From positions 20,026,001-20,090,000 of the forward strand of contig OZ365113.1 in the NCBI GenBank assembly GCA_977030845.1: a DNA stretch of 64,000 nt. The letters run 5' to 3'. The notes beneath the pieces were generated by a model. The model worked only from the letters and a program-made list of their open reading frames with translations, was not told the origin of the DNA and made no database searches. Source of the DNA: Fimbriosthenelais zetlandica. Taxonomy: Eukaryota. Shown here piece by piece: positions 7,645 to 63,000 of this stretch (positions are counted from its first letter, which is position 1; every line of letters starts with the position of its first letter). Position numbers and translations under genes: made by a program.

Positions 7645-7965
7645 AGTGTCACTTTACACTAGCGCCAATGGGAGTTTTCTCCTATTATCGACGTCTACAT
7701 TATCGCGTTGGCAAAACCTACCAAACTGTCACATAATTATTAGAATGATATGCCTAGGCGTTGTATTTCAGTACAATATGTCTAAAATATCAAGGTTTGT
7801 ACAATAAAGGTCTGAACCGCTTAATAAAGTGTCAGTTTAGTACTTTACATTAGCGCCAATGGGAGTTTTCTCCTATTATCGACGTAACATCTTTGAATTA
7901 AAGACCTAGATTTTGTTGCTCAGTACAATGAATTTGTCTAAAATATCAAGGTTTCTGCAATAAAA
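7645..7965. repeat. Diverged tandem duplication (~150-190-bp period)
   Basis: actttaca(c/t)tagcgccaatgggagttttctcctattatcgacgt at 7651 and 7842; cagtacaat...gtctaaaatatcaaggttt...caataaa at 7769 and 7921. Confidence 0.85.
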
Positions 7966-10900
7966 ATTTGGAGAATGCCCCTTAATAATCATGTAAACAA
8001 ATTACACATAGTAGTACAATGAATGTAGGCCTTCTAACTTAAAATTGTTTGCATGTACATAACGGAGCCCCATTATGATTGATAACCTGGGGGACACCCC
8101 ATGTTATATCAACTTAACTACGGTGTCCATTACACCAATATCAAGCTATTATAAGAGGCGGAGCAAACAGTTTGAGTGTTAATAAATACCTGTAAACCTT
8201 CTAACCCACCCACCGAGGAGCCCACATAGAGTGAAGGGGATTGGTGTAACCAATACATCAGGCGGTCCCCTCTGAAGTCCCACACCTGACACACCTTTCT
8301 TTCTGTGTAGGTGGCTTTGTCTTGACCTTTGTAAAAAAGGCTTTGATGTTATGCTGGTAAAGTTTTGGCAATGATAATCTTTTTTTCTTTATGATGGTTT
8401 TAACATATTACCTGCATCATAAGGCAGATGGAGGCAAAATGTCCTCACCAACCAGCATATGAAATAAGTCCATTGACGTGCCTTGAAATAACAACAAAAA
8501 GGACAATGAAGAGTGAAAGCTATCAACAAATTGAGACTAATAGAAACGTGGGAATAAAATACATGACCAATAGAATTAAACATCTAAACACGTAAAGTCT
8601 TGACCCCAATCAACGGGACGTTGTCAGTGTGACATATGGGTAGTTGCGTGTGAAACGGGCCAGTACAAAGAGCATGACGAAGTGACCAGAAGCCCTACCA
8701 TCTGGCCACTATTGAATCTAACCATAGTCCATTGAGCCCGCGGGGGACCACTGATCACTCCCACATCAACAATAATAAGTCATCTGGCTGGGTAAACACT
8801 GAGTGGTATTATTATCATTATTATCACCACCCGCCAATACTTTACACAGTGAGCCTTGTCAATAGCCCGGGTCCTTATGACACGTCCCGTGTCAGGCCCC
8901 ACTCACCCGTCTTGGGTTATGTTCTAACTTGTGGCTTCATGCATTGCAATTGACTTTCAACCACTTGATACCCCACTTGAGCAGAAAGACATTTGTAGCT
9001 TGTTTACCAATCATTCTTCTAGGACTAATAAAGCAATAAATCAAGTCCCCTCCTTCCAACCTCTTATAGAGAATCATGCACTCCTCCAAAGGCAATTATT
9101 TTATACATTTATAATCTAGAGGACATGGATAGCTTTTTAAAGCTTTGATTGTTTGCAAATCATTATTTTATTTCATTATTTCGTTGAATTGCCAATCACA
9201 ATGATAGCTGAAAATGTACGGAATGTACATTTTTAGAATAACCAACGAGTATTTCTATACTCGTTGGAATAACCTAGCTCGCCTATAGATAGAAATTGCA
9301 CGAACAAATTCAAATTCCTAGATGATTTGAATATGCTCAGCATTTGGTATTTTTCATAATATTGCAATATTTCGATTTTGGTGAATGCTCAAACAAGCTG
9401 ACATGGGCAATCAGTCATAGCAAAAGAGGGGAATGTTTGAAAAGAATCTAGAGGGAATGACAGATATTTGCGTGCATGTGTCTTGCCCAAGCAAACTGGA
9501 ATTTGTCGTCTGGCAGCCGTCTGGTTCCCGCTCTCAGGGTCTGGAACTTGAAGAGGGCTGCTACTGCGCGTGCGCATGGAAAAGGCCACCTGGCCCCTTG
9601 GATAACAAGGTATACGCACCTTATGGTCGTCATGGCAACAGCTGTCAGGAGCGCAAGGTGTGTTTGTGGCTGTCAGGACAGAGTCCCATGTACAGGAGAG
9701 GGTCTGTGTACATAATGTGAACTAATATATCATGCACATTACTTGTCCCTATGACAATGAGGGTGTCCAGATTTTTTCATTAGATATCACCCCAAGGTTG
9801 TAACTTTTTTTATAATCCCTTCACAGTTCCATTTCGCAACTAAACATCTTTAATTTGGGGGGTCAGGGTGGGCGTGTTTGAACTGTTGAATTACCCGTAT
9901 ATGACATGTATATGACGTCACCAGACAGTATTAGACTGGCAACAGGGACATTTTCTAATGTTTATAAAGATGCATTCAAGATTCAATTTCCAATTGGAGC
10001 ATCTTCATAATATAGATCCATCTGTGGTTGCATTATTACATACATTGTAAGACCTTTGATACGAGTATATAGCAGTGATGACCTGGAGGGGAGATATAAT
10101 ATATAAAAGCATGTCACACCTTACAATCCTCCCCTATATCTACTCCTCACACAGCTGAAACATCAGCTGTGTGTGAGAGAGATGCGGTACAACACAGGAC
10201 CAACACTTTGAGGTCACGTCAAGGTCAGCTTCACATACTCCCAAACACCTGACCACTCTCTGACCTTCCATATGCTTCTCTGCTGCCGACACATCCAATC
10301 ATGTTTAATCAGCTTGCAGCTTCAGCTAGTTATCTAGTGGGATTAAGCGCTATTTACATTTTCTAGGTGTTAGCCTGCATGAAGGAACTAATATATACGC
10401 ACACCTTTCGTAGCATGTGTGTCGACCAAAATCTCCCATAAATACCCACAATAGTGTCAGGATATTAGGGTTGAAACGCCTGAGGTCTGGACAGATCTAA
10501 TTGCTACCTAGGGATAAAATAAATCGCAATGTTATGATAGAGTGGAGCACAGAGTTGATGTAGGGACTGTAGATGATAAGGATTAATGACCTTTCCTGGA
10601 CAAGCATTCATTGCAGCCAGGATTCGGTCCACAAGCTCTCACAAAAGCCATGCCCTGTTAAGATGACTTAAGATGACTTAACCCCAGAGCACATCGGGTC
10701 AATTGGGGTTGACCTGGAGCAAAGGGTCACGGCCTATAGGTCATAGGGGTTTCTTTTGTGCCTATCTCTGCCTCAACCCCCATCTCGATATCCAACCAGC
10801 CCATCTCATTCCCACCCAAGCTCATCTCTCACATGCCGGATCGTGAGTTTTTCCGATCACAGTTAAAAAATCATTGAAACCGATCAAAACAAAAACACAG

Positions 10901-45839: not shown

Positions 45840-45989
45840 CTACATCCCATCAACACTTGGTAGAGAATCATTGCTTTCATGATTACCGATGGGATCATCA
45901 TCGTGTTCCCGCATGGTTGTCTGAACGGGTAGCTTCTTGTCATAGCCTCTTTTTCCTACCAACCAATATGTCTGCATGGACCCTTTACC
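45840..45989 (-). CDS. PstS-GC terminal exon ([12 protein letters not shown]...SVDGM*)
   Basis: Acceptor ttttcctcttgcag|GGT. KGKGxMxTYWL is the conserved end of class III cyclase domains. Stop TAG at 45840-45842. Confidence 0.93.
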   Translation of the reverse strand, partial: GKGSMQTYWLVGKRGYDKKLPVQTTMREHDDDPIGNHESNDSLPSVDGM

Positions 45990-48900
45990 CTGCAAGAGGA
46001 AAAACAAATCATTATCAGGAAAACCAGGAAGTTAATGAGATTTTTCAGACAACTTTCATAACCATTATATTAATGTTCCAAATCAGGGTTCCTGTAGTTC
46101 GGAGATGATCAAATTTAAAACTTTTTTAAAATACTTTTTAAGACCAATGATCCTCATTTTTAACACCTAAAATTCGCACTTTCTGACAAAGAATAGTCGG
46201 CAAAATCGCCAGTTAAATCATTGATAACATCGTCAGTAGTATAGTGGACAATGGCGACAAGGCCTTAAATTTTCCCAAAACCAATTTAAGACTTTTTAAT
46301 GCCGCGCGGGAATCCTGCAAATGAGCATCTTTCACAGTAAATGATGTGATGGCTTCTATTCTCACCATTAGATCGCATGTTAGCCCTACCTTCACGCTAC
46401 AGGTAAAACGTTATAAGGAGTTCTAGATGAAAGAAAATTTAATGAATCCACTGGAGTGACCAGTACAGGAGCTCCTGTGTGATTAATTAGGCCTACACTC
46501 ATATTTGCCATCGTCTTCATGGGACCACCTCAAAGCATGTTAGAATGATTAGTGGTGAGAGATAGATTCATTGTCAAAGCCAGCTGCAACGCTTCTTGGA
46601 ACATAGATATTGAACAGCGCTGTTGTGAATTTAACATGAGGCATGTTATAACCGTCGTCTGCCTCTTAACTAATGTCAGCTTCAGGCAGGAACATTCGAT
46701 TACATAATGTGAAGCAGAATAATTTTACATGACAAATTTCACATTCATCTATGAAACAAAACATTAGTAGGCCTACTTAAAACATGTTATGGTCATACGA
46801 TTTTAAAGCGGGTAACCATAGACTGGATTTAAAAACGGGACTAAACATCTCTAATTAATTATTTCTTAATTTATAATTACCTTTATCTCCATGTTGCCTC
46901 TTCGTCGTATTTCATATCCCCCGATGGTATCCAGCACCTTTTTTGTAGAAGAGGACAAGTGGATTTTCATGGGTCTTGAATTGGTTTCCATTCTTGAGGC
47001 AGTATTGACTGCATCGCCAAACAAACAGTATCTTGGCATCTTGTTTCCAACCACGCCAGCGACCACTGAGCCACTGTTTACGCCTATTCTGATACGAAGC
47101 ATCTCCTCTGGTCTATGCTTTACTTTGAAGCTGCCACAGGCCACTGCAATGTCCAGGGACATATTGGCAATGTGCGAGGCATGCATTTTACCGTTTCTTG
47201 TTGGTAACCCTGATATGCACATGTAAGCGTCACCAATAGTTTCAACCTAGAAGAGAAGTAAATCATGAGATCATCAAGTGCTACATGAAAATACAATATT
47301 TAGCTACAATATTTAATAATTATCCAAATCCCTTTCTTTGACATGGTACTATTACATATATCGTTGTATCCTTACAAGCATTAATTTGAACGTACCTTAT
47401 ACACATCATGGGCCTCAATGACAGCATCAAATGTTGTGTATAAATCGTTGAGAAAGTCAACAATTTCCAAAGGTGATGATTCTGCCGCAATGGTAGTGAA
47501 ACCCACAATGTCGGAGAAATAGATAGTCACCGACCCGAACGCTTCTGGACTGACAGACTCTCCACGCGATAAGGAATCTGCAACTGAAGCTGGTAAGATC
47601 TTGTGCAACAACTCTTCAACTTGCTTGAGAGCTGCATTTAATTCGATTGTTCTTTCATTCACTTTGTCCTCCAAGTGATCGACGTATTTTTCTAGTTCTT
47701 CCATCATACAATCAAGTAAACTCTTCCTGTTGGGATTAGCTTGCTTGACCATTTTGATTACTTTTGAAAATTGAGGACGACCGGCAGGTTCAGGAGACCA
47801 GCAAGCAGTTAGGATGGATACCATTCTTTTTGGCATCTCTGATCCCAGCTCTGGCCTGTAGTCACCTTGGTAAATATCTTTAATTATTTTCTTGGGTTCT
47901 TTCTTTGACAGGGCTTCATCAAACGGATGTTTTCTAATGAAAAGTTCTATAACTGCCATAGAAAAACTGTAAACATCAGAATATTTTGTCGGGGGCAGAT
48001 ATCTGTCAGCGAGAATTTCAGGAGCGGTCCAAAACAGGTGGTTTGCAATCATATTTTCGTCGGTGCCTCCGGAATCTACATCAGAAAGTTCTCCAAGTAC
48101 TCCAGACCTGGTGATGATGTCCTGTGATGCGACCAGTTTTGTGTACTGCCAATCACCAACTTTGATTGTCCATCGGGAGTCAATGTAACAAGTGGCAGTA
48201 CTAAGAAAGCCATGGATTACATGATTCTGGTGTAGATAGTCCATGCCCATAGCTATGTCCATTGCCATAGTGTATTTAAAGTTGTCATCCAGATTGAAAC
48301 GCTCGCTATGTATGACGTCCTGCAAGGTGCCTTTCGTGCAATATAGGCTGATCAATTGGGTCTTCTTATCAAAGTCACTTATGCCATAGAAATTCACCAC
48401 ATTCAGATGATTTACTGTATCCCGCATCCACAGAAGCAAGCGCTTCGTACGATGCCTTAGTTCTTTAGGATCTTTGATGATGGTAATGGTTTGTATGTTC
48501 ACTAGTTCCCCATTCCATTGTCCGAACATCAGTGATTCAGGGTGGTCATGGTTTGCCTGCGACTTTCTAGATGATTTTTTTTCGGCCAGACTTCCAGCGC
48601 TCCTTGTGTGTCCTGTTATTGAACTATCAACAGACACAACCGACTTGGCGTTTATATTTTTCATAATGACTATAGAACTTGAAGGAATTATGTACTCTTT
48701 TAGAAGAATGGCTTTGTTTAGTTTCACTTGGTGATACACTATGTAGGCGACGAACAGTAAGAGAAGAAATATAGCAATGGGCAAGGCTATAAATAGTGGC
48801 GTACGCCATGTCTGAGCGGCAAATATTTCCATATATATCTCTTCCTCTACCAATTCCTTAACACTTCTCCCTTTACATGAAAATTCATTCAAAACCTGAT

Positions 48901-50319
48901 CAAAGATCCTAGTTGCGACTGCAGTACTCAGGGGCACCATACCCTTTGCAATGGTGGTATTTCTGGCAGTACTACTAGTCAGAAACCATTCAATGTAGCG
49001 ATAGAGAGCTGTTGCAGATCTACAGTCCTTCATAGTTGTTTTGTAGATAATTAGATAGGTGAAACTAGATATAGGATAACTGCTTCTTCCCGGAGCATCA
49101 ACGATGGAGAGGGTCATTTTCGAGGTGAATCCAGCTGAGAAGGCGTCCATAGCACTCTGTATTGTGGTCACGTTGGCCTCCACCAAGACATCGTCCTTGT
49201 TGAAAATCCTGGCTGATTGTAAACTAAAACTGACCGCATCAGCAGCTGACAGATAGCCGAGGGAGTAACGAATGGACACGAGTAAGCCAGCCATGCCAGT
49301 ATTAGTGTTTCCATAAAAGGAAATGGCATTAGGGTTCCAATGTACAGGTACATAGTTATCCAGTCCAACGCTGAATGATCCGTATGTGGCGTTCCATTCA
49401 GAACTGAAGGCGCTCAACGTACGAGTGAAAACGTCGGTGGTTCCTGACTTGTCAGATCGAGCCAGGACTATGATTTTAGAGTTGGGCAATGTAATGCCTG
49501 GGTTAGCTATGGCTATTTCTGTATCGTTCCACCACGTTATGGTTCCATTGTAGATGCCCACCACATGCTGACGTTTGAGATTTATTTGTGGATTATTCGG
49601 GAGATGGTAGGCAAGAACTACAGCCCTGGAATAGAAATAATTGATGAGTCTGGGTCAGTTGGGATTTATGTTATATAGGCCTAGAAGTATGTCACCTGTC
49701 CAAGCAGGATCTAAACCATCATTTTCCGCAAGGAACAAATCCTATGACTGATCTAACTTGCAAATTAAAGGTAAACATTTAACATCACAACTCACCCAGC
49801 CATGGTTGGAAACATTTGCAGATCTTGGTGAGTCAGATATTCGTTTTCGGAAAGTATTGAATCTGAACCAGCGTATTCCACGGGATCTCCATATCCTTCA
49901 ATTCTGGCTTTGCCTGCACCACTCCCAACAGCGTCATAGATCATATTCAGCGAGATGTCCCTTATCCTCTACAAATAAAACAAACACCCCGAGTTACTGG
50001 AGCTAACCAACATCAAGATTGAAGCGATAGTTGAAGAAGAATATGAAAGTTTCATACATATGCCTATAGAACATAATGGTTCAACTTTATGGTTGTTGCT
50101 AAGAATTAATAGATTTGGGGTTCAACACTGTTCATAAATATTTCTTAATAAAATGATCAAACTGACCTGGTACAGGAGAATCCATTGTTTGTAGACTGCA
50201 GATGGAAACGATGCTCCAGCTCCACGGAGCTGAACAACTTCACTTGCTGCGGCTACCTGGAGTGAGCATTGGGTCACTAAAGCCAGAGCCACACACAGAT
50301 AGAACGTCCACTGCTGCAT
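45840..50319 (-). CDS. Receptor guanylyl cyclase with PstS-type (type II periplasmic phosphate-binding) ectodomain; join(50167-50319,49796-49968,47396-49625,46881-47246,45840-45989), 1023 aa
   Basis: Five exons with GT-AG boundaries and consistent phases (0,2,0,0) sum to 3072 nt = 1023 aa + TAG. Domain order: signal peptide, PstS motifs ([33 protein letters not shown]), one TM helix, kinase-homology domain, coiled coil, cyclase domain ([36 protein letters not shown]). Confidence 0.93.
46881..47246 (-). CDS. PstS-GC exon: guanylyl cyclase catalytic core
   Basis: Acceptor cttctcttctag|GTT, donor AAG|GTAATT, 366 nt. VETIGDAYM...[38 protein letters not shown]; the GTP-specifying Glu (KVE) and Cys (RYC) are present. 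Confidence 0.96.
47396..49625 (-). CDS. PstS-GC large exon (2230 nt): rest of PstS domain, TM helix (~48734-48799), kinase-homology domain, coiled coil, start of cyclase domain
   Basis: Acceptor ttctattccag|G, donor AAG|GTACGT. Matches ORF 47381-49564 extended to AVVLAYHLP. The intron falls at the conserved DVYK|VETIGD position. Confidence 0.95.
49796..49968 (-). CDS. PstS-GC exon ([58 protein letters not shown]); missed by the ORF track
   Basis: Acceptor tttatttgtag|AGG, donor GG|GTGAGT, 173 nt, phase 0 to 2. Contains the PstS Y-x-x-x-GSGAG and (D/E)-(F/Y)-x-x-SD motifs. Confidence 0.92.
50167..50319 (-). CDS. PstS-GC exon: signal peptide and start of PstS domain ([15 protein letters not shown]...[24 protein letters not shown])
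   Basis: Hydrophobic N-terminus followed by LRGAGASFP (cf. E. coli PstS LTGAGATFP). Donor CAG|GTCAGT at 50167; the exon's acceptor is at 50354. Confidence 0.88.
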
Positions 50320-50692
50320 GTTATCACGCTGCTCATGTCTGTTCACATGACGACCTGAAAATATGGAATATTATTGTTACATTTTCTAAATGGCAAACAT
50401 TTCAGACTCCACAACATTAACTCATACAGCCAGCCTATGTGGGCCTGGTTATTTTCATTATTTGAATTTCCTGAAATCAAAGGTACTATACTGTTAAACC
50501 TTAACTTTCTAAGGACCAAAACTATAGGGACTACCAGCACTCCGGTTCATCCATTTCAGCAATGCCAAAATCTTTGAAGGCCAAAACTGTTGAATTTTAT
50601 AATGAAATAGTACCCTATATAAATAAATTAATTGTATTCTCAGTTCTATTAAACAAACAGAAGGTAGATTTAGTAAAATATGCAATTCTTAC

Positions 50693-54065: not shown

Positions 54066-57000
54066 CTACAATTAAGAGTCGAGGAGAAAAAAAATTAAAT
54101 ATTTTGTTGAATATGTTAGCTATCCTGAATGTGACATGTTCATTCAAAGTACTGGATAGTGTAGTGTATATATTATGATTTTTATCAATAATAACTGTGT
54201 CTGTACATGTGTTGGTGGGGACGGGTATATTATTAGATATCATTTAATTATATCCATGTAATTAAAAAGGTAAGGTAATACCGTATGTCAAGCAAGCATG
54301 CAACACCAAACTCTGACCATCACTAATGACTTCCGCATCATAAGCACATACAATTGCATTGCATACCTGGAGGCAATGAAGCTTTTTTGTTTTTGTAACC
54401 GCAATTACTTGATGCACCGATGATCAATATATCTTGCCAGGATTAATTACATGCATGATGTAGTATAATTTGGGAAGGAAAGTAAACGTTTGGAATCAAC
54501 AAACAAATGGCCAAAAGATGTAAAGCTAATGGACTGGCCACAAAAGAGAGGAGAAAGACAGAGAGGGGACAGAAAAAACACAAGCCAAGCCACCAAAGCA
54601 AGATCTAAGAAAACAGGTATAATCATATGTTAGAATTCCAATCAATGTTATCAAATCAACACAAGGAAACAGACAAAGACAAGGAGGAACAAATTCACAC
54701 ACACCCGCAGAAACAATTAGGGTAAAACAAGAATGTAACGTGTGGGGAAGGAATATATAATACTCAACAAGCACGTTTTGAATACACTTTAAATGTAGAT
54801 TCAACGGAAAAATCAGTACCAACACCTGTAGCAGGAAAGATAACATGTGATACAGAAAGGAAACTTATTAGTAAAATAACTTAAATCTAACTTATTATTA
54901 AGATTAGGGATGAGGTAGGTTGTACTCACCAGCAGTCGTTTACCATCAGCGTCATTATCGATGATTTGTGGCTGGGGTTGGTGGGAGGGTAGTGAGTTGA
55001 CCGGGGTGTCACCTGATGATATTTCACCAATCTCTCTCCCCTCATCCTGCTCCTCCAGGTCTGCTCCAGTGTCTACCACCTCCTCTGATCCATGATTCAC
55101 CAATGTTTCCTGTTCTATTACTTCCACTCTTTCCTGTTGCGGTTCTTTCTCTTCCTGGGTTTCATCTACCTGATCTCTGTCACTTGTTTTCTCCTGTTCA
55201 CTTTCAGTGCTATGGACAGTTTGCTCTGTTTGCTCCTGCTGCTTCCCTTCCTCCACTTGCTTCTCTTCCTGGCACTTCTTCGTGGGAGGTTCAAGGGAAT
55301 TAGATGAAGAGCCACTAGTAGTTGGGGTTTCCCCACTCGATTTTAGAACCAAATCAAGGTCCTGTGATGAAGGAGCCTCTCCCATCTCCTCCACAACACC
55401 TTCGTCCGTCGTTTCAGTGGCCTGAGCTGATGGGCTGGGTTTACAAGTTGTATTTTGATCAGATTGTACAACCTTTTCATCTGGGGAAATCACTTCGGTA
55501 GATATGACTTCAGTTGACTTCGCCACTTCAGTAGAGATGATTTCAATGGACTTCGCCACTTCAGTAGAGATGACTTCTTTTGACTTCTCCGCTTCTGTAG
55601 AGATGATTTCAACTGACCTCGCCAGTTCAGTAGAGATAACTTCAGTTGACTTCGCCACTTCAGTAGAGATAGCTCCATTTGACTTTGCAACTTCAGTAGA
55701 GATCACTTCAGTTGACTTAGCAACGTCAGTCGACATGACTCCAGTTGACTCCGCTACTTCTGCGGATATAACTTCAGTTGACTCCGCTACTTCTGCGGAT
55801 ATAACTTCAGTTGACTTCGCAACTTCGGTAGAGATAACTTCAGTTGACTTCGGCACTTCAGTAGAGATAACTTCAGTTGACTTCGCCACTTCAGTAGAGA
55901 TAACTTCAGTTGACTTGGGCACTTCAGTAGAGATAACTTCAGTTGACTTCGCCACTTCAGTAGAGATAACTTCAGTTGACTTCGCCACTTCAGTAGAGAT
56001 AACTTCAGTTGACTTGGGCACTTCAGTAGAGATAACTTCAATTGACTTGGGCACTTCAGTAGAGATAACTTCAGCTGACTTCGCCACTTCAGTAGAGATA
56101 TCTCCAGATGAGTTCGCCACTTCAGTTGACTTCGCCGCTTCAGTAGAGAAAATATCAGGTGACGTTTCCACTTCAGCTGACTTCGCAGCATCAGTAGAGA
56201 TAACTTCAGTTGACTTCGCCACTTCAGTAGAGATATCTCCAGATGAGTTCGCCACTTCAGTAGGGGTCACCGCCTCCAGGTCCTGTAAAGAGTCTGTACC
56301 TCTGGCCTCACCTTTCCCCGAGCTATCAACCTCGGAATTGAGTGACGATTCCCCTTCAGTTTCTTCCTGTGGTGGAGGTAGGGAATTGTCAGGAGAGGCT
56401 ATCAACTTCCTCCGTGATTTAAGGATAGAGCCGTATGTAGACACCAGTTTATGTGCAGGACTTCTCACTTCATCATCGTCCATCCTCTTCTCCTGACTGG
56501 TTTTCGATGTAGGGCTGAATAAATGGGACATGCCTTCACCTAAAAAGCGTTTTTTCCTATCACTCTCGCGGAAACTGTCATCAAGATCAGGTGGGGCCTC
56601 GGCTAAATCCTCGCCAAGCTTGGCCATCTTGTCGGTATAGAGGCGGCGCTTTTGGCCTCTCGCCCTTTTCTTGCTTGAGGTGAATAGAACGTTGACGTCA
56701 GGCCCATCAGTTTTTTCTTTTACAAGTCCGATTTTCTTTTCTTTCACATCAAGGACCATCATGCTTTCGTTTCGGCTTTTCTTGGCTTTCTTAATTTTGT
56801 TACTTTTCTTTCCTCCCGTCTCGGGTATAAACTCAGGATCTTCCATATCTAAATCACTCTCTGAATCTGTCTTTCTGGCTCCTTTCCTCTTGGCACCTTT
56901 CGCACGTTTACTTTTCTTTCCCATCGCCTCGGAAATGAACTCAGGATCGTCCATATCTAAATCACTATCTGAGTCTATCTTTCTTTCACCTTTCCTCTTG

Positions 57001-60000
57001 GCACTTTTCACAAGTTTATTTTTCTTTCCCATCGCCTCTGGAATAAACTCAGGATCTTCCATAATATCACTATCTGAGTCGGTCTTTCTGGCTCCTTTCC
57101 TCTTGGCACTTTTCACAAGTTTATTTTTCTTTCCCATCGCCTCGGGAATAAACTCAGGATCCTCCATAATATCACTATCTGTGTATATCTTTCTTTCACC
57201 TTTCCTCTTGGTACTTTTCACACGTTTACTTTTCTTTCCCATCGCCTCTGGAATAAATTCAGGATCTTCCATAATATCATTATCTGAGTCTATCTTTCTT
57301 TCACCTTTCCTCTTGGAACCTTTCCCAAGTTTACTTTCCTTTCCCATCGCCTCTGGAATAATGTCAGTATCTTCCATATCTAAATCACTATCTGAGTCTG
57401 TCTTTCTTTCACCTTTCCTCTTGGCACTTTTCACACGTTTACTTTCTTCATCATTATGGACCTTTGTTTTGCTCTTTGCTTTTTTAGACAACTTGCCTTT
57501 CAGCTTTGACTGCGTCTGACTTCTCGCTTCATCGTCAGATACAGTTTCACTCAATCTGCCTTTGCGTTTCTTAGAACGAGATCGGGGAAGTTCTACTATA
57601 TCCTCTTCAAACTCCTTTTCTAAGTCGTCAGAAGTGATTTTCTCCTCTCGAGCACCACTGTCACTCTCACTGTCCTGGTGGTGAGATATTTTATCCGGGA
57701 CAGTATCTTCATCTGTGCTGATTTCAATGAGATCGTATCTCTTTCTCTCTCTTCCCTTATTTCTACTTGATGATCTTATATTTTTCACCTCAGGCGATCT
57801 CTTATGTTCTCTTTTTTTCTGCACATTCATAGAAGATTCAGCACATGTTCTTAATGTCATTCTGTGATGCCAATCTGAATCCTCAGACGTCAACGACTCA
57901 GACAGCCGATCCTGGGAGGAACTTCTCTTAGGTCTTTTTGGGATGATTGAAAATGTTTTTTTCTTGATTTCCAGGCGAGCTTCACTTCGAGTGACTTGCT
58001 TATAACTTTGATCGACATCGAAAACAGGCAACTCCTCTAATGAGGAATCCAGAATGATTGGTACAGGAACCTTTCTAGATCTCTTGCTCCTCCTTGATTT
58101 ACTTGATTTATGGCTACAACCACTTTTGGCATCATCTATTTCGGAATCTAACTCAGAGCCAACATCCTCGCCACTTTCAGACACCATAGGCTGGATGTCA
58201 TCTTCATTCAACAACTGTTCGAATTTCCTTTGCATGCTATGTACACGTTTGGGCTCCACGACAGTGATTCTTTCCAAACATACTTTAGGTGACAAGATGG
58301 TAGAAAGTCCAATGTCTGATGGTGGCAGTTCATCATCAGATGGCTCTGTTTTTATAACAGCAGTCCCATCCTCTTGCTGATCTAAATTCTCTCTGTTACT
58401 TTCCTCTTGATGATGTGTCCTTTTCCGAAAATCAAATAGCAATGCTACGTCCGCGAGGACAACCTTGCAATTTTTGTATATCCGGTATTCTGTGGCAAAT
58501 TTGGACTTTGCGCTTTCCTGGGCAACTTCGGACCTAGTACTTTCCTGGGCAAATTCAGACATAGCGCTTTCCTGGGCAACTTCAGACATAGCGCTTTCCT
58601 GGGCAATTTCAGACAGAGCGCTTTCCTGGACAACTTTGGAGCTAGCACCTTCAAACTCCTGCAGCTCATCGTGAGAACTTTGTTCTGAAGATGACAAAGG
58701 GATTTGACTTGCACTCAAAGATGGCGAGTTAGAGGCACTTTTTACCCTCCGTGGTCTTCCTCTCCCCCGTTTAACTGGCGACTGCTGCCCCGAGTCTGGC
58801 GTCTTCCCACCTGAAGGTTCAGGGGAAGTCAATACCAGGCGATCGGACTCAGAACTATCATAAAGAAGCTGCTGGCTTTTCTTTTTATTGACTCTCAGTT
58901 GAGAAGGAGATAGGGAAGAGTCTAAGTCTTCAAGTTCACAGGCGTCCTCAGTGTTGGTTTTGAATTTGCCAGTGCTCCTCGTCATTGGAGAAGAGAATTT
59001 TACTTTGTCATTCACCACTTTTTCACCAGATTTAGTATCACCACTGCTCGTAATGTTCGAATCGGACACCAACACTAGAGATGAAATATTAGAACCACTT
59101 GACTCCAGATAAGTTATTTCTTGAGCAAGTAACTGTTGATCTGAACTTGTGGCACACACAGATTCTGCCACAATAACCACAGGTTGGTTGAGTGAAGTCG
59201 AGGGGACAATATTGCCTATTTTAGCAGCGTTTTCACTGGAGATTGGAGATGCTTTTCCAGTTTCCCTGGTAAAGGCAGATTTCGTCTTTCGCATTTTCTT
59301 TCCTTTACTAGATAAAGCTTCGGGAGTCGGGGGCAGGTGTGAATCAGATTCAGGAGCCACTTTCTCATTAGAATCTGTTAGTGGAGAAGGGGAATCAAAT
59401 AAGATTTCGGGGGACAAACAGTCTTCTGGAACAACAGTTCTCCGGGAGGGAGTATCATTCTTGGCTTTTCCTTTAAGATTGAGCGCTTTCTGACCACTCA
59501 CTGCAGGAGAGACTGATCTGGTTACCCTTCTTGACAATGATGAAGGTTCAGAGTCACTTGAAATTTCAATTTTTTTTGCTGTGTTGTTCCTCGCTCCAGA
59601 CTGCGGTGTCTTTTGCCTAGAGCGTGGTGTCTTCCCAACTGATGGTTCAGGGGAAGCCATTCCCAGAATATCTGAATCTGAACTATTATGAAGACTTGAA
59701 TTCGCAGATGGTGAGGTGGAGGCACGGTTTACCTTCCGTGGTCTCCCTCTTCCCCGTTTGACTGGCGACTGCTGCCCCGATTCTGGTGTCTTCCCACCTG
59801 AATTTTCTGAGAGATTGGTTCCCAGGGGTTCTGAATTTGAACTAATATACATTTGGAGACTTTTCATTCTATTGACTCTCAATTGAGCAGGCGATAGGGA
59901 AGATTCTAATACTTCAGGTCCACAGGCATCCTCTTCAGAAGTCGCTGCGTTTTTTCCCATTGTTCTAGTGCTCCTGGTCACATGAGAAGAGAATTTGGGT

Positions 60001-63000
60001 CTGACAGTTACAGCGAGTTCATTCTGGTTTTGATTAGAGTCACTATTAGACTCTGATGATTTTTCTTTTTGCTCATCAGATTGCCGCGAGAGGACGACAA
60101 TTTCATCTGCGTCCATTAGAGGCGTTGGGAATCTTGGGCGATTAGTAACTCTCTCCTCAGCCCTTCTCTTTTCAATATCGCTAACAGGTCTTGAAGGACT
60201 ATGGACGACAGCTTGCACTGTGAACCTGCAACTTTCACTCATATCGTTTTGATTACTAACAGTTTGTTGAGAACTTGGGAGGACGGGAGAGAGCTGGACA
60301 TCTGGACGTGGCACAGCCTGAGAAGCCTCATCAATTTGTGTTGAATGGTATTGCGTGTGCGGAACTAGTGCTTGGTCTATTGTCGAGCCATCTTCACTTG
60401 GGGATTTTCTTTGTGATCGAGGAGTCTTTGGGACTAATGGACTAATTTTACTGCCTTTTTTGGATTGGGCACTGTCTTTGAGAATGTCTTTGAGTTTGTA
60501 ACTCGGCTTTGGTCTGCGTGGAGATCTTCGTGGACTCTCATCTCCTGATAGTTCAACAGATCGTATATGTTTAGCAATACTGGATTTAGAGAGGCTAGAC
60601 CTAGAATCACTATTTGGTTGACTTTTCTGAATTTTCTCACATGTATCCCTTTGTACACGTTTGTCCTTCAAGGACGATTTAGAAGACGGTGTGACACTTG
60701 CTGATGAACCCCCAGAGAATTGGTGCATGATAATCTTTCGATTTATCATTGATGCCGGTGCTTTCTGTGCCTCTGTTGTTGGAGAATGAATGTCTGTAGA
60801 TTCCTTTGAGCCATCTGCCTGTTTAGATGCCCCATTGGTGAAAACCCGACTTTGTGTATTGTCCACAAATGAAGTAACATCACAAACACTTAAGTCCACT
60901 TCTTCCAAACACTCCCCGACATCCTTGATTAAATTAGGCACAGATATATCAAGAGCATCAGGTACTTTCCTCACCTCAGAGCTGGGGTTCTCTGAGTTAG
61001 AAGTGCTCTTCTTGCGACCGGGTTTCTCAGTCAGTGCCTTCGTTTTAGATTTAGGTTTCACAGGCGTATTTCTCCGAGAACTATCACCCGAGGCACCAGG
61101 GCCATCACCAGAGAGGGTGACTTGATGAGTGGATGATGTGTCACTGTCTGTACTAGGAATTCTTTGACCTTGCGTCGAACCTATACTGTCATCATCTGTT
61201 TTGCCACTAGTGACACTTATCTCACCACTTTGCTGTCTCTCAGAAACGGGCACCACTTTAGTTGCTGTCTTCACAGCACCACTCGTGGTAGCCTGCTCTG
61301 GCTGGGGCTGTATACTTTCTGGGCTGGCGGATTTATTATTAGATTTCTCTCTCGTAGAGACATCCTTGGCTGAAGAAAGGGTGGCAGAAGGATCCAGCGA
61401 CGATTCCTGTGATTCCTGTGGTGGACGGTAGTCAGCTTTCCATCCTAGAAATTGACAAAGAGCAAATAAGCCAAAATGTCACTCAACGAAAGATTTTATT
61501 ACAATTTAAAAAAAAATCATTCAGAACGAGAGTAGATGACAGACTTACTAAACTGGGTGTAATTTGTATTGCTTCGATTTGGGGATTGTCTTTAATAATA
61601 TTATATAAAAGTTATATTTAAACTTACTCTCAATGCTTTCTAGAATCTCGTAGTCGGCTCTAGGAATGGCAAATTTCTGTAAGGACTTGTCTAATGCGCT
61701 CACTCTCTGACAACCAGGTAGATCTTTCAAGGATAAACGATGCATGGAGACTTTTTTGGTAAATATACCACCATGTACTAAAGTCGTATTACCTCCTGAA
61801 ATACAAACGTGGATTGTTTTAAAAACATAAAATTAAAACATAAAATTAAATTGATCATCTCATATACACATATACTTGCATGTACAGGTTTCTATTTTTA
61901 CATTAACTCCTTCATGGAAATTCGTGAGGTTCGAACCAAATGTTTTTTATTTCACTTTTGTGTTGATAAATGAAATAAATAAATAAATATTGAAATACCT
62001 TTGTCAGGCCCACTTATTAATAATAAATATTGAAATACCTTTGTCAGGCCCGGTTGTATTGCGTTCCACGGTCTCTCTTCTTGAGTCTGTAGCATTGCTT
62101 TTTGCTCTCTTCTCAGCATTCTTCTCAGTAGATTTATCATTCTCAGGTCCCCTGACACTGCTTTCTGCAGTCATCTCATTCTCCGAGTCTGTAGCATTGC
62201 TGTCTGACGATTTCTTCTTGTCCGAGTCTTCATCTGAGGGACAATTAATGCGCTGTACCAGTTGAGTCAGTTGTGTGGAGTTTAAGGAGTCATCAACTTG
62301 GGAGGCAGATATCTGACTTGCTTCAGTTGAGCCTAAAGTACTCGTGCTTTTACTTCTTGCCGCCAGTCTGAAATGTCACACAAACAATGATTAAATCAAA
62401 TCAATGTTCAGGTACTTTTTCACACAAGTTCCGAAGGACATTTATAATGTAATATAATGTATTTTGAGACTGCCTACTCTAATTTCACAGTCCATGAACT
62501 CATTCTTACCTCCAATTCATCCAAAGTTGAGCTGACTTTCGCTGAACATCGGGCATTTCCATGCTACAAATGAAAAGAAATCAATTGAATTCAATAATAA
62601 GGGAGAGGAGTAGCATAATCTCGTAGAAAATTATGGTCAGACTAAAAATAACCTTTTATCAATTTCGTTTGAATTTGTGGTAATGCGAAGAATTTGAAGA
62701 AGCCTTCTCAGACATATCACAAAGTTAAATACATCGTTTTTAATTTACATAGTCCTCCTTAAGCAGCTAATATTTACTCACCAGTATTTCAGGCTCGACT
62801 TCATTCGACACCCCGTGTAGTTGCCCCATGTCTTGAACCCATTCACCACTAACTCAAAGAAGCAGTCGTTCTGTGGGAATAAATTCAGGAAACTGTCAGG
62901 AATGTGCTATCACTAAGAAAGGTAAAATGGTAAACAACAGAAGTGAAATAATACGAGCAAATTCTTATAATAAACAATATACAAAATTATTTGCATACAC

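Follow-up and report, generated by a model that had tools for sequence, protein, structure and literature searches.

We identified a minus-strand gene in a 64,000-nucleotide stretch of Fimbriosthenelais zetlandica DNA (hereafter the window), in which four motifs probably make up a complete, functional-looking orthophosphate pocket of a PstS-type "Venus flytrap" domain that forms the ectodomain of a single-pass receptor guanylyl cyclase. What is new in this receptor cyclase is the PstS-type ectodomain in place of ANF_receptor; specifically, the predicted protein gave no Pfam match to the ANF_receptor type of ectodomain (PF01094) and matched PBP_like_2 instead. As judged from its sequence, the receptor is a strong candidate for a dedicated extracellular phosphate sensor in animals.

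The gene model has five exons (Table 1), with GT..AG boundaries at 4/4 introns and a spliced frame that is open over 1023 codons. Its product has the layout of a receptor guanylyl cyclase, namely a signal peptide, the PstS-type ectodomain, one transmembrane helix, a kinase-homology domain, a coiled coil and a class III guanylyl cyclase, in that order. The catalytic HRD of the kinase-homology domain is replaced by HGF, as in receptor guanylyl cyclases, and the Pfam match to HNOBA was weak (0.0071). The exon-4 part of the cyclase aligned without gaps to ANP receptor 1 (GC-A; 3.8e-47). In the cyclase domain, [16 protein letters not shown] and [16 protein letters not shown] hold the metal-binding Asp pair, the guanine-specifying Glu and Cys, and the transition-state Asn and Arg, roles assigned from what is established for class III cyclases; the set of catalytic motifs is intact in the predicted product. 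Searching the 64-kb window with the product (tblastn) returned a single copy and no tandem paralogues.

Several other readings of the locus were rejected. A start at the upstream ATG (50336) is out of frame and runs into a stop, and two short ORFs on the plus strand (48474-48734 and 49758-50006) have no support and overlap with coding exons or intron 2. Bacterial contamination or a DING-like artefact was rejected on account of the introns, the animal-type domain fusion and the intron positions shared with a relative.

Table 1 Features of the predicted receptor gene and its product, in positions of the window.
Feature	Position	Strand	Remarks
Coding span	45840..50319	-	5 exons, predicted 1023 aa
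Exon 1	50319-50167	-	
Exon 2	49968-49796	-	
Exon 3	49625-47396	-	
Exon 4	47246-46881	-	
Exon 5 (last)	45989-45840	-	End of cyclase domain ([10 protein letters not shown]) and short tail, including stop codon
Signal peptide, aa 1-26	50242..50319	-	Hydrophobic N-terminus, precedes first PstS strand
Ectodomain, aa 27-383	48803..50241	-	PstS fold plus ~35-aa C-terminal helix/juxtamembrane segment; introns 1 and 2 inside span
GAGASFP, aa 33-39, exon 1	50203-50223	-	Direct translation; S37 = E. coli T10, F38 = F11
GSGAG, aa 66-70, exon 2	49912-49926	-	S67 = E. coli S38
YAGSD, aa 83-87, exon 2	49861-49875	-	D87 = E. coli D56, proton-accepting Asp
RSDKSGTT, aa 165-172, exon 3	49436-49459	-	R165, D167, S169, G170, T171 = E. 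coli R135, D137, S139, G140, T141
N217	49301..49303	-	E. coli N177, PhoX Asn201 (alignment)
C310, first Cys of family-specific pair	49022..49024	-	E. coli P267; 99% conserved in receptor-cyclase class
C359, second Cys of pair	48875..48877	-	E. coli K313; 99% conserved in receptor-cyclase class
Transmembrane helix, aa 384-406	48734..48802	-	23-residue hydrophobic run adjoining ectodomain
Kinase-homology domain	47747..48439	-	Pfam PK_Tyr_Ser-Thr 1.4e-32
Guanylyl cyclase catalytic domain	46881..47548	-	Exon 3 end and exon 4, intron between; Pfam Guanylate_cyc 9.4e-13 and 6.1e-41

Direct translation gives GAGASFP and RSDKSGTT on the minus strand at the positions stated in an earlier note on this DNA, and GSGAG and YAGSD, also listed in that note, lie on the same strand; the four motifs are spread over three exons, and the pocket therefore exists only in the spliced product. 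The E. coli motifs that the earlier note had quoted agree with the actual pstS product (NC_000913.3), in which, by mature numbering, GAGATFP lies at 6-12, GSSGG at 37-41, FGASD at 52-56 and RADGSGTS at 135-142. Asp56 has an established role in the discrimination between phosphate and sulfate, as reported by Luecke and Quiocho in 1990. All nine named ligand positions were in register with E. coli PstS (MAFFT and profile alignment) and eight of the nine residues were identical, which at a background identity of 27.9% (87/312) has a binomial probability of 2.5e-4. The claim that every canonical phosphate-contact motif of PstS is retained thus holds, with Ser in place of T10. With regard to the N-terminal part, HMMER gave the same register in an orthologue that has the same N-terminal ligand residues, and RSDKSGT of exon 3 was paired with RSDGSGT or RSDGSGD (X. 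citri PstS 8ods, M. tuberculosis PstS-1). T10 and F11, the equivalents of S37 and F38, contact phosphate via the side-chain OH and main-chain NH. In PhoX of X. citri, the natural ligand at the T10 position is Ser (Ser34) and Asn201 is a further phosphate contact (PMC5439949).

On profile and model comparisons, the ectodomain has the PstS fold. Its binding is probably PstS-like, and it is not a PstS transporter subunit. Its exon-3 part matched Pfam PF12849 PBP_like_2 at 2.9e-16 (60.5 bits, above the cutoff of 27). For the PstS equivalog of NCBIfam (TIGR00975, cutoff 205), full orthologue ectodomains scored above the cutoff (239.4 and 207), and the exon-3 part of the window protein, which holds 275 of the ~357 ectodomain residues, reached 153.7 bits by itself against this full-length cutoff. 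The best PstS match in a PDB sequence search had an E-value of 6.6e-23, and, of 27 matches, the top 26 (down to E 0.16) were PstS, phosphate-binding or DING proteins. For the structure we used an AlphaFold model of the ectodomain of a Liolophura (chiton) orthologue (P0010, residues 26-385; pLDDT 96.6), which is 47% identical to the window protein and has the same nine residues. This orthologue model adopts a two-lobed type II binding-protein fold like that of E. coli PstS. Its top structural matches were phosphate-bound, closed E. coli PstS complexes (TM 0.92), and the superposition on phosphate-bound E. coli PstS covered 318/321 residues at an rmsd of 1.7 Å (Z 43.5). The structure-based comparison that had been set as a test of the pocket was therefore passed on the 47%-identical orthologue model, by global superposition and a gap-free sequence register. 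The domain is fused to a receptor in an intron-containing gene, outside the PstCAB transporter context (operon, free periplasmic or lipoprotein form). It carries five N-glycosylation sequons, and C310 and C359, the only two Cys in the mature ectodomain, would form a disulfide.

Pocket retention in one sequence alone would not show selection. Our family set of 72 receptor-cyclase ectodomains consisted of the window sequence and 71 domains found in 70 database proteins, most of them representatives of clusters, with named members among molluscs, annelids, nemerteans, a priapulid and a tardigrade. The ligand columns ranked among the most conserved of the 354 scored columns; the mean entropy of the nine was 0.48 bits compared with 2.07 for random nine-column sets, and 0 of 100,000 random sets were as low. 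Column entropy was used rather than codon dN/dS because synonymous sites are saturated at the 59% protein identity of even the closest relative. The R135 column was R in 70/70 sequences and the G140 column G in 68/69, followed by S139 (S in 64/70), D137 (D in 62/70) and T141 (T in 55/70, S in 14/70). Only 12-18 database sequences cover the N-terminal ligand columns, since most database gene models are without exons 1-2; S38 was Ser in 17/17 receptor-cyclase sequences that reach it, and D56 was D in 14/18 and E in 4/18. In four further relatives, whose N-terminal exons were retrieved from genomic DNA, the residues read S/T-F-S-D in three and S-F-T-E in one.

Substitutions at the ligand columns were mostly conservative (T/S at 141, D/E at 56 and 137), and the variants G and T at D137 match the E. 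coli D137G/T/N mutants crystallised with phosphate (entry titles 1qui, 1qul, 1quk). The C-terminal motif was altered in ~9% of family members (6/69), and the N177-equivalent column (window N217) was less conserved (N in 34/72). Free variation of orthologues at the pocket positions, which the earlier note had named as grounds for giving up its reading, is the contrary of what we saw. This family-level conservation supports selection on the pocket for oxyanion binding, in line with the earlier note, which had argued for selection for phosphate binding.

The same note had also held that the domain is not an inert scaffold. It is very improbable that the ligand residues are conserved for the fold alone, in a domain without ligand function. 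They do sit where the two lobes meet, on loops and at helix N-termini, places prone to conservation in any homologous family, but the pattern of conservation is chemical (S/T, D/E, invariant R) and not merely structural. Moreover, domain 4 of a Chromosphaera protein, the inner domains of Entosiphon, one 7TM protein (P0014) and a Helobdella (leech) paralogue have lost pocket residues and still match the PstS profile; pocket-less PstS-like domains thus exist, the ligand residues are not required for the fold, and the scaffold alternative is weakened. Least probable of all is an unexpressed gene or a recent pseudogene with motifs that have not yet decayed, considering the 1023 open codons over five exons, the canonical splice sites and the intact cyclase motifs. 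In the closest relative, at only 59% protein identity, every motif is present and two introns lie at the same positions, and this means purifying selection over a long time.

Two further alternatives accept a working pocket and are unlikely, each to about the same degree. The pocket could bind another small ligand in vivo, either a different tetrahedral oxyanion (arsenate, vanadate, thiophosphate) or a phosphorylated metabolite, with phosphate as a competitor at most. It is established that PstS proteins bind arsenate, more weakly than phosphate, and Ser at T10 together with Glu at D56 in 4/18 relatives could slightly retune the pocket. However, all ligands of the phosphate complex are present, the closed phosphate complexes were the best structural matches of the orthologue model, and Ser and Glu are likewise found at the two positions in PhoX and in PstS-like proteins of the same hit list that have a single domain and the length of bacterial PstS. 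The closed PstS pocket is also known to bury all four oxygens, with no space for an ester substituent. Alternatively, phosphate could be a constitutive structural cofactor at an always-saturated site, with the true signal elsewhere (a peptide or protein on the outer surface) or with an ectodomain that serves only for dimerisation. Bacterial PstS has an affinity for phosphate of about micromolar; if this also applies here, a receptor facing body fluid with millimolar phosphate would be saturated, and a sensing role therefore depends on the site of exposure. Known receptor cyclases are regulated by peptides or accessory proteins, and the thermal stability of PstS and PhoX rises with phosphate (PMC5439949). 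Against this, phosphate in sea water (nanomolar to low micromolar) is within the PstS affinity range, and the intact pocket is kept on unrelated outputs in protists and fungi, which is simplest if the pocket itself senses.

For the receptor as an orthophosphate sensor, we infer phosphate as the ligand as well as the existence and direction of a coupling to cGMP. Extracellular phosphate would be buried between the two lobes and hydrogen-bonded by S37 and F38 from exon 1, S67 and D87 from exon 2, and R165, S169, G170 and T171 from exon 3, with D167 forming a salt bridge to R165. D87 would take the proton of HPO4(2-)/H2PO4(-), such that fully ionised sulfate is rejected; this exclusion would suit sea-water animals, for which sulfate is very abundant and phosphate scarce. 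Lobe closure may then be relayed via the family-specific C-terminal helix, probably stapled by C310-C359, and the conserved juxtamembrane segment, and onwards through the transmembrane helix, the kinase-homology domain and the coiled coil to the dimeric cyclase, where cGMP synthesis would be altered.

Protists and fungi also have PstS-type ectodomains with intact pockets, carried by class-C 7TM, TRP-like or cyclase-only proteins, the output modules beside the receptor cyclase being 7tm_3 (with an intact pocket in Calcarisporiella and Parvularia), 7tm_3 with RGS, TRP-like and cyclase-only. A PBP_like_2 and 7tm_3 fusion appears in published domain catalogues for Spizellomyces (PMC3251606) and Plasmodiophora (PMC4815078), where the domain is listed only, with no pocket analysis and no proposal of phosphate sensing. 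By taxon, the receptor guanylyl cyclase form was seen in protostomes and Fabomonas and the cyclase-only form in Andalucia; the class-C 7TM output, alone or with RGS, came from a fungus and a nucleariid, and the TRP-like channel protein from an ichthyosporean.

The occurrence of the same intact pocket on other protist and fungal receptor types suggests, from sequence comparison, a general eukaryotic solution to phosphate sensing. Tentatively, and with somewhat less than even confidence, we propose that PstS-type domains are a widespread eukaryotic orthophosphate-sensing module with at least four outputs, and that the window gene could encode a direct phosphate chemoreceptor with coupling to cGMP, which would make it the first animal receptor recognised as dedicated to extracellular phosphate. 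The window gene offers a receptor that bears on how animal cells perceive inorganic phosphate outside them; to our knowledge, there is no dedicated animal receptor with a defined phosphate-binding site. A full-text literature search returned no paper describing a PstS-type receptor guanylyl cyclase family of animals. Because a very well understood pocket allows prediction of the ligand at the atomic level and cGMP output can readily be measured, a few point mutants would put the hypothesis to a direct test.

Compared with E. coli PstS (PDB 1IXH/2ABH), the ectodomain shares a common fold over essentially the whole protein, as seen in the orthologue model, and the same pocket except for T10 to Ser. 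The window domain differs in being neither free in a periplasm nor partnered by PstCAB; introns, the signal peptide, the five sequons, the Cys pair, the ~35-aa C-terminal helix and the fusion to transmembrane, kinase-homology and cyclase parts are all unlike E. coli PstS. With GC-A and NPR1-type receptors, the window protein has in common the single transmembrane helix, the kinase-homology domain, the coiled coil and the cyclase, whereas its ectodomain is of the PstS type (type II) instead of ANF_receptor (type I, LivJ-like), and the predicted ligand is an inorganic anion inside one protomer and not a peptide at the dimer interface. Databases misname the family: under automatic annotation, orthologues are labelled "atrial natriuretic peptide receptor-like" or "retinal guanylyl cyclase 2-like". 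The PBP_like_2 and 7tm_3 fusions share the outside domain of the PstS type, but their output is a 7TM/G-protein module and not a cyclase.

The group of DING proteins and human phosphate-binding protein (HPBP), soluble PstS-superfamily phosphate binders reported from eukaryotic samples, has the same pocket chemistry. DING structures are more distant from the orthologue model (Z 32-33, rmsd 2.6-2.7 Å, 21-23% identity, ~375 aa, with extra insertions), sequence matches to DING proteins were at phmmer E 7.8e-6 or weaker, and the mature N-terminus of the window protein is not DINGG. We know of no eukaryotic gene ever found for DING proteins; the window domain, in contrast, has an unambiguous, intron-containing gene in an animal genome. 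Bacteria also use PstS occupancy to signal phosphate availability, beyond transport, as in Pseudomonas aeruginosa CtpL with PstS and in PstSCAB-PhoU-PhoR. In those systems PstS, as a separate protein, docks onto a receptor or transporter, whereas here the PstS-type domain and the eukaryotic cGMP-producing module are predicted to lie in one polypeptide.

The four PstS-like motifs described in the earlier note were all confirmed on the minus strand, GAGASFP and RSDKSGTT by translation at exactly the positions it had given, and belong to a single gene whose five exons were delimited by reading the DNA and locating splice sites. All introns are GT..AG, and the spliced frame stays open over 1023 codons. 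The motifs fall in exons 1, 2, 2 and 3, and the pocket is therefore complete only after splicing. The ATG at 50336, further upstream, is out of frame and meets a stop; plus-strand ORFs in the region of the gene were short and without support, and no second copy of the receptor gene was found within the window. Upstream of the receptor gene, the minus strand also holds a very long ORF (54813-61274; 2153 aa).

Features of the receptor gene and protein; for ligand positions, the last column gives the residues in the aligned column of 72 receptor-cyclase ectodomains, that of the window protein included
Feature	Position	Strand	Detail
Exon 1	50319-50167	-	
Exon 2	49968-49796	-	
Exon 3	49625-47396	-	
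Exon 4	47246-46881	-	
Exon 5	45989-45840	-	
GAGASFP	50203-50223	-	exon 1; direct translation
GSGAG	49912-49926	-	exon 2
YAGSD	49861-49875	-	exon 2
RSDKSGTT	49436-49459	-	exon 3; direct translation
C310	49022-49024	-	99% conserved in receptor-cyclase family; Pro267 in E. coli PstS
C359	48875-48877	-	99% conserved in receptor-cyclase family; Lys313 in E. coli PstS
Signal peptide	aa 1-26		
Ectodomain	aa 27-383		
Transmembrane run	aa 384-406		23 hydrophobic residues
E. coli T10	S37		S 11, T 1
E. coli F11	F38		F 9, L 2, I 1
E. coli S38	S67		S 17/17
E. coli D56	D87		D 14, E 4
E. coli R135	R165		R 70/70
E. coli D137	D167		D 62, E 4, G 2, T 1, F 1
E. coli S139	S169		S 64, A 5, T 1
E. coli G140	G170		G 68/69
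E. coli T141	T171		T 55, S 14, D 1

By homology, the window ectodomain is a PstS. Searching its exon-3 part against solved structures (phmmer) gave 27 matches at E <= 1, the top 26 of which (to E 0.16) were phosphate-binding proteins, the best being X. citri PstS (8ods, 6.6e-23), M. tuberculosis PstS-1 (1.6e-21), PstS of Y. pestis (8.7e-20) and PstS of E. coli (1ixh, 4.3e-18). Against TIGR00975, the NCBIfam equivalog model that NCBI uses to name bacterial PstS, the same part alone scored 153.7 bits, below the 205-bit cutoff; the full ectodomains of two orthologues scored 239.4 and 207, both above it. The E. coli motifs given in the earlier note proved right when compared with the real pstS product from NC_000913.3, our reference for the residue check (GAGATFP 6-12, GSSGG 37-41, FGASD 52-56 and RADGSGTS 135-142, mature numbering). 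In the register obtained from MAFFT and profile alignment of the window protein with E. coli PstS, the canonical phosphate contacts are retained, as had been claimed: 8/9 are identical (binomial P = 2.5e-4 against a background identity of 27.9%, 87/312), and the sole change, T10 to S37, is conservative and preserves the hydroxyl. HMMER gave the identical N-terminal register for an orthologue with the same N-terminal ligand residues, and paired RSDKSGT of window exon 3 with RSDGSGT and RSDGSGD of X. citri and M. tuberculosis PstS, respectively. Ser is the natural ligand at the T10-equivalent position of X. citri PhoX, whose pocket comprises Ser34, Ser62, Asp80, Arg159, Gly164, Thr165 and Asn201 (PMC5439949); Asn201 also has an equivalent in the window protein, N217 in our alignment.

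The structural model is of the Liolophura sinensis orthologue; its ectodomain is 47% identical to that of the window protein, carries the same nine residues and was modelled from a 53-row family alignment (mean pLDDT 96.6, pTM 0.92). The top Foldseek matches of this model were E. coli PstS crystals, nearly all phosphate complexes (TM 0.92, target-normalised; rmsd 2.0-2.4 Å), and a second aligner superposed it on 318/321 PstS residues at 1.7 Å rmsd (Z 43.5), far ahead of DING proteins (Z ~33), the short PstS of Gram-positive bacteria (Z ~27 at most) and molybdate binders (Z ~17). Given this near-complete superposition and a register that is gap-free at every motif, the model makes it very unlikely that the ligand residues sit away from the cleft, the outcome that the earlier note had named as adverse. 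C310 and C359 are the only cysteines of the mature window ectodomain and are probably joined in a disulfide that staples the C-terminal helix running to the membrane. This helix and the juxtamembrane segment are conserved additions specific to the receptor-cyclase family and include an invariant Glu (E375), and none of the five N-glycosylation sequons of the window ectodomain falls within the pocket motifs.

Searching 1.84 billion cluster representatives exhaustively, without a profile, returned 5147 relatives at E <= 1e-3 and 111 at E <= 1e-30, and a kinase-homology and/or cyclase domain was present in 70/161 relative proteins examined. Named members of the receptor-cyclase family came from molluscs (Haliotis, Argopecten, Mercenaria, Liolophura, Bulinus), annelids (Owenia, Paralvinella, Helobdella), nemerteans (Lineus, Tubulanus), one priapulid and one tardigrade. 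Free variation at the pocket positions among orthologues is contradicted by the column counts and by their entropy across the 72 sequences: the nine ligand columns averaged 0.48 bits versus 2.07 for random nine-column sets, with 0/100,000 sets as low. Variants at D137 are unlikely to affect binding, since E. coli D137N, D137G and D137T were crystallised with phosphate (entry titles of 1quk, 1qui and 1qul). Few sequences reach the N-terminal columns, since the database models are mostly ORF calls without exons 1-2. In four other relatives these exons were recovered from genomic DNA, and gave S/T-F-S-D in three and S-F-T-E in one paralogue.

Most family database entries (e.g., P0001-P0009, P0017, P0020) begin inside exon 3; they lack three ligand residues, and domain scans therefore under-score the family. 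The window protein itself was absent from the databases searched. The closest relative (P0001, 59% identical) shares the first two intron positions of the window gene and has additional introns in the kinase and cyclase region. It occurs, identical and with the same layout, on two contigs of ENA assembly ERZ25767047 (L002 and L003), which are probably haplotigs. L006 of that assembly carries P0089, a divergent paralogue whose residues at the S38 and D56 positions are T and E. In the relative on L004, only ~20 bases separate the exon 1 and 2 equivalents (7903-8181), and its first intron may be missing or very short.

Could the pocket simply be held in place by the fold of an inert scaffold? Ligand residues are lost in several domains that still match the PstS profile, namely the fourth domain of a Chromosphaera protein, inner domains of two Entosiphon proteins, the 7TM protein P0014 and the Helobdella robusta paralogue P0096 (E, F and A at the D56, D137 and S139 positions). 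Pocket loss is thus compatible with the fold. The C-terminal motif is kept in 63/69 (about 91%) of receptor-cyclase members. Taken together, these sequence comparisons disfavour the inert scaffold and point to selection on ligand binding, in agreement with the earlier note.

Pocket decay may be linked with non-marine habitats: P0096, from a freshwater leech, has a degraded pocket and no detected cyclase domain, and the tardigrade member P0092 (Paramacrobiotus metropolitanus) has A at S139. In P0010 (Liolophura sinensis), both metal-binding Asp motifs of the cyclase domain are replaced (Pfam 90 bits vs. 222 in the Owenia orthologue), and this cyclase looks catalytically dead. Since the cyclase motifs are replaced yet the phosphate pocket is intact, P0010 may be a pseudo-cyclase paralogue.

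The window protein runs from signal peptide and ectodomain through the transmembrane run to a kinase-homology domain, a coiled coil and a class III cyclase domain (Pfam PBP_like_2 2.9e-16; PK_Tyr_Ser-Thr 1.4e-32; Guanylate_cyc 9.4e-13 at the end of exon 3 and 6.1e-41 in exon 4). The cyclase domain retains [16 protein letters not shown] and [16 protein letters not shown], motifs that in class III cyclases carry both metal-binding Asp residues, the Glu and Cys that specify guanine, and the Asn and Arg of catalysis. With this motif set, a gap-free alignment of the exon-4 part with ANP receptor 1 (GC-A; 3.8e-47), and HGF replacing the HRD of active kinases, a change shared by other receptor cyclases, the output module looks functional.

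Phosphate would be enclosed between the two lobes through the PstS-type hydrogen-bond set, a step that homology strongly supports, and D87 would take the phosphate proton and exclude sulfate. Luecke and Quiocho are said to have described the equivalent PstS Asp in 1990 as the proton acceptor that rejects sulfate. Lobe closure would shift the stapled C-terminal helix and, through it, the transmembrane helix, altering the activity of the dimeric cyclase; we infer this coupling from likeness to other receptor cyclases. A PstS-like affinity, about micromolar, would suit the phosphate level of sea water and leave the receptor saturated in body fluid; given such an affinity, the site at which the receptor is exposed matters for sensing.

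Full-text literature searches found no description of a PstS-type receptor guanylyl cyclase; PBP_like_2 + 7tm_3 fusions are merely catalogued for a chytrid (PMC3251606) and Plasmodiophora (PMC4815078), and the orthologues are publicly annotated as natriuretic-peptide or retinal cyclase receptors. Other signalling modules also carry PstS-type ectodomains, whose pockets are mostly intact (database proteins P0132, P0090, P0121, P0138, P0015, P0153): two PstS domains with kinase and cyclase in Fabomonas, PstS with cyclase in Andalucia, with 7tm_3 in the fungus Calcarisporiella, with 7tm_3 and RGS in Parvularia, four PstS with Ephrin_rec_like and a TRP-like region in Chromosphaera, and PstS with Ephrin_rec_like in Palpitomonas. 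Intact pockets on such varied protist and fungal outputs suggest that the domain is a general eukaryotic phosphate-sensing module. A quick FastTree, which we treat only as a lead, nests the animal receptor domains in one group with the above protist domains outside and short bacterial-length PstS-like proteins more basal, many leaves being unlabelled. Compared with PstS itself, the window ectodomain is predicted by homology to bind alike, but the protein differs from the transporter subunit in its fused architecture without a PstCAB partner. Relative to receptor guanylyl cyclases, it is alike in every intracellular feature, whereas their defining ANF_receptor ectodomain is absent and a PstS-type domain stands in front of the membrane.
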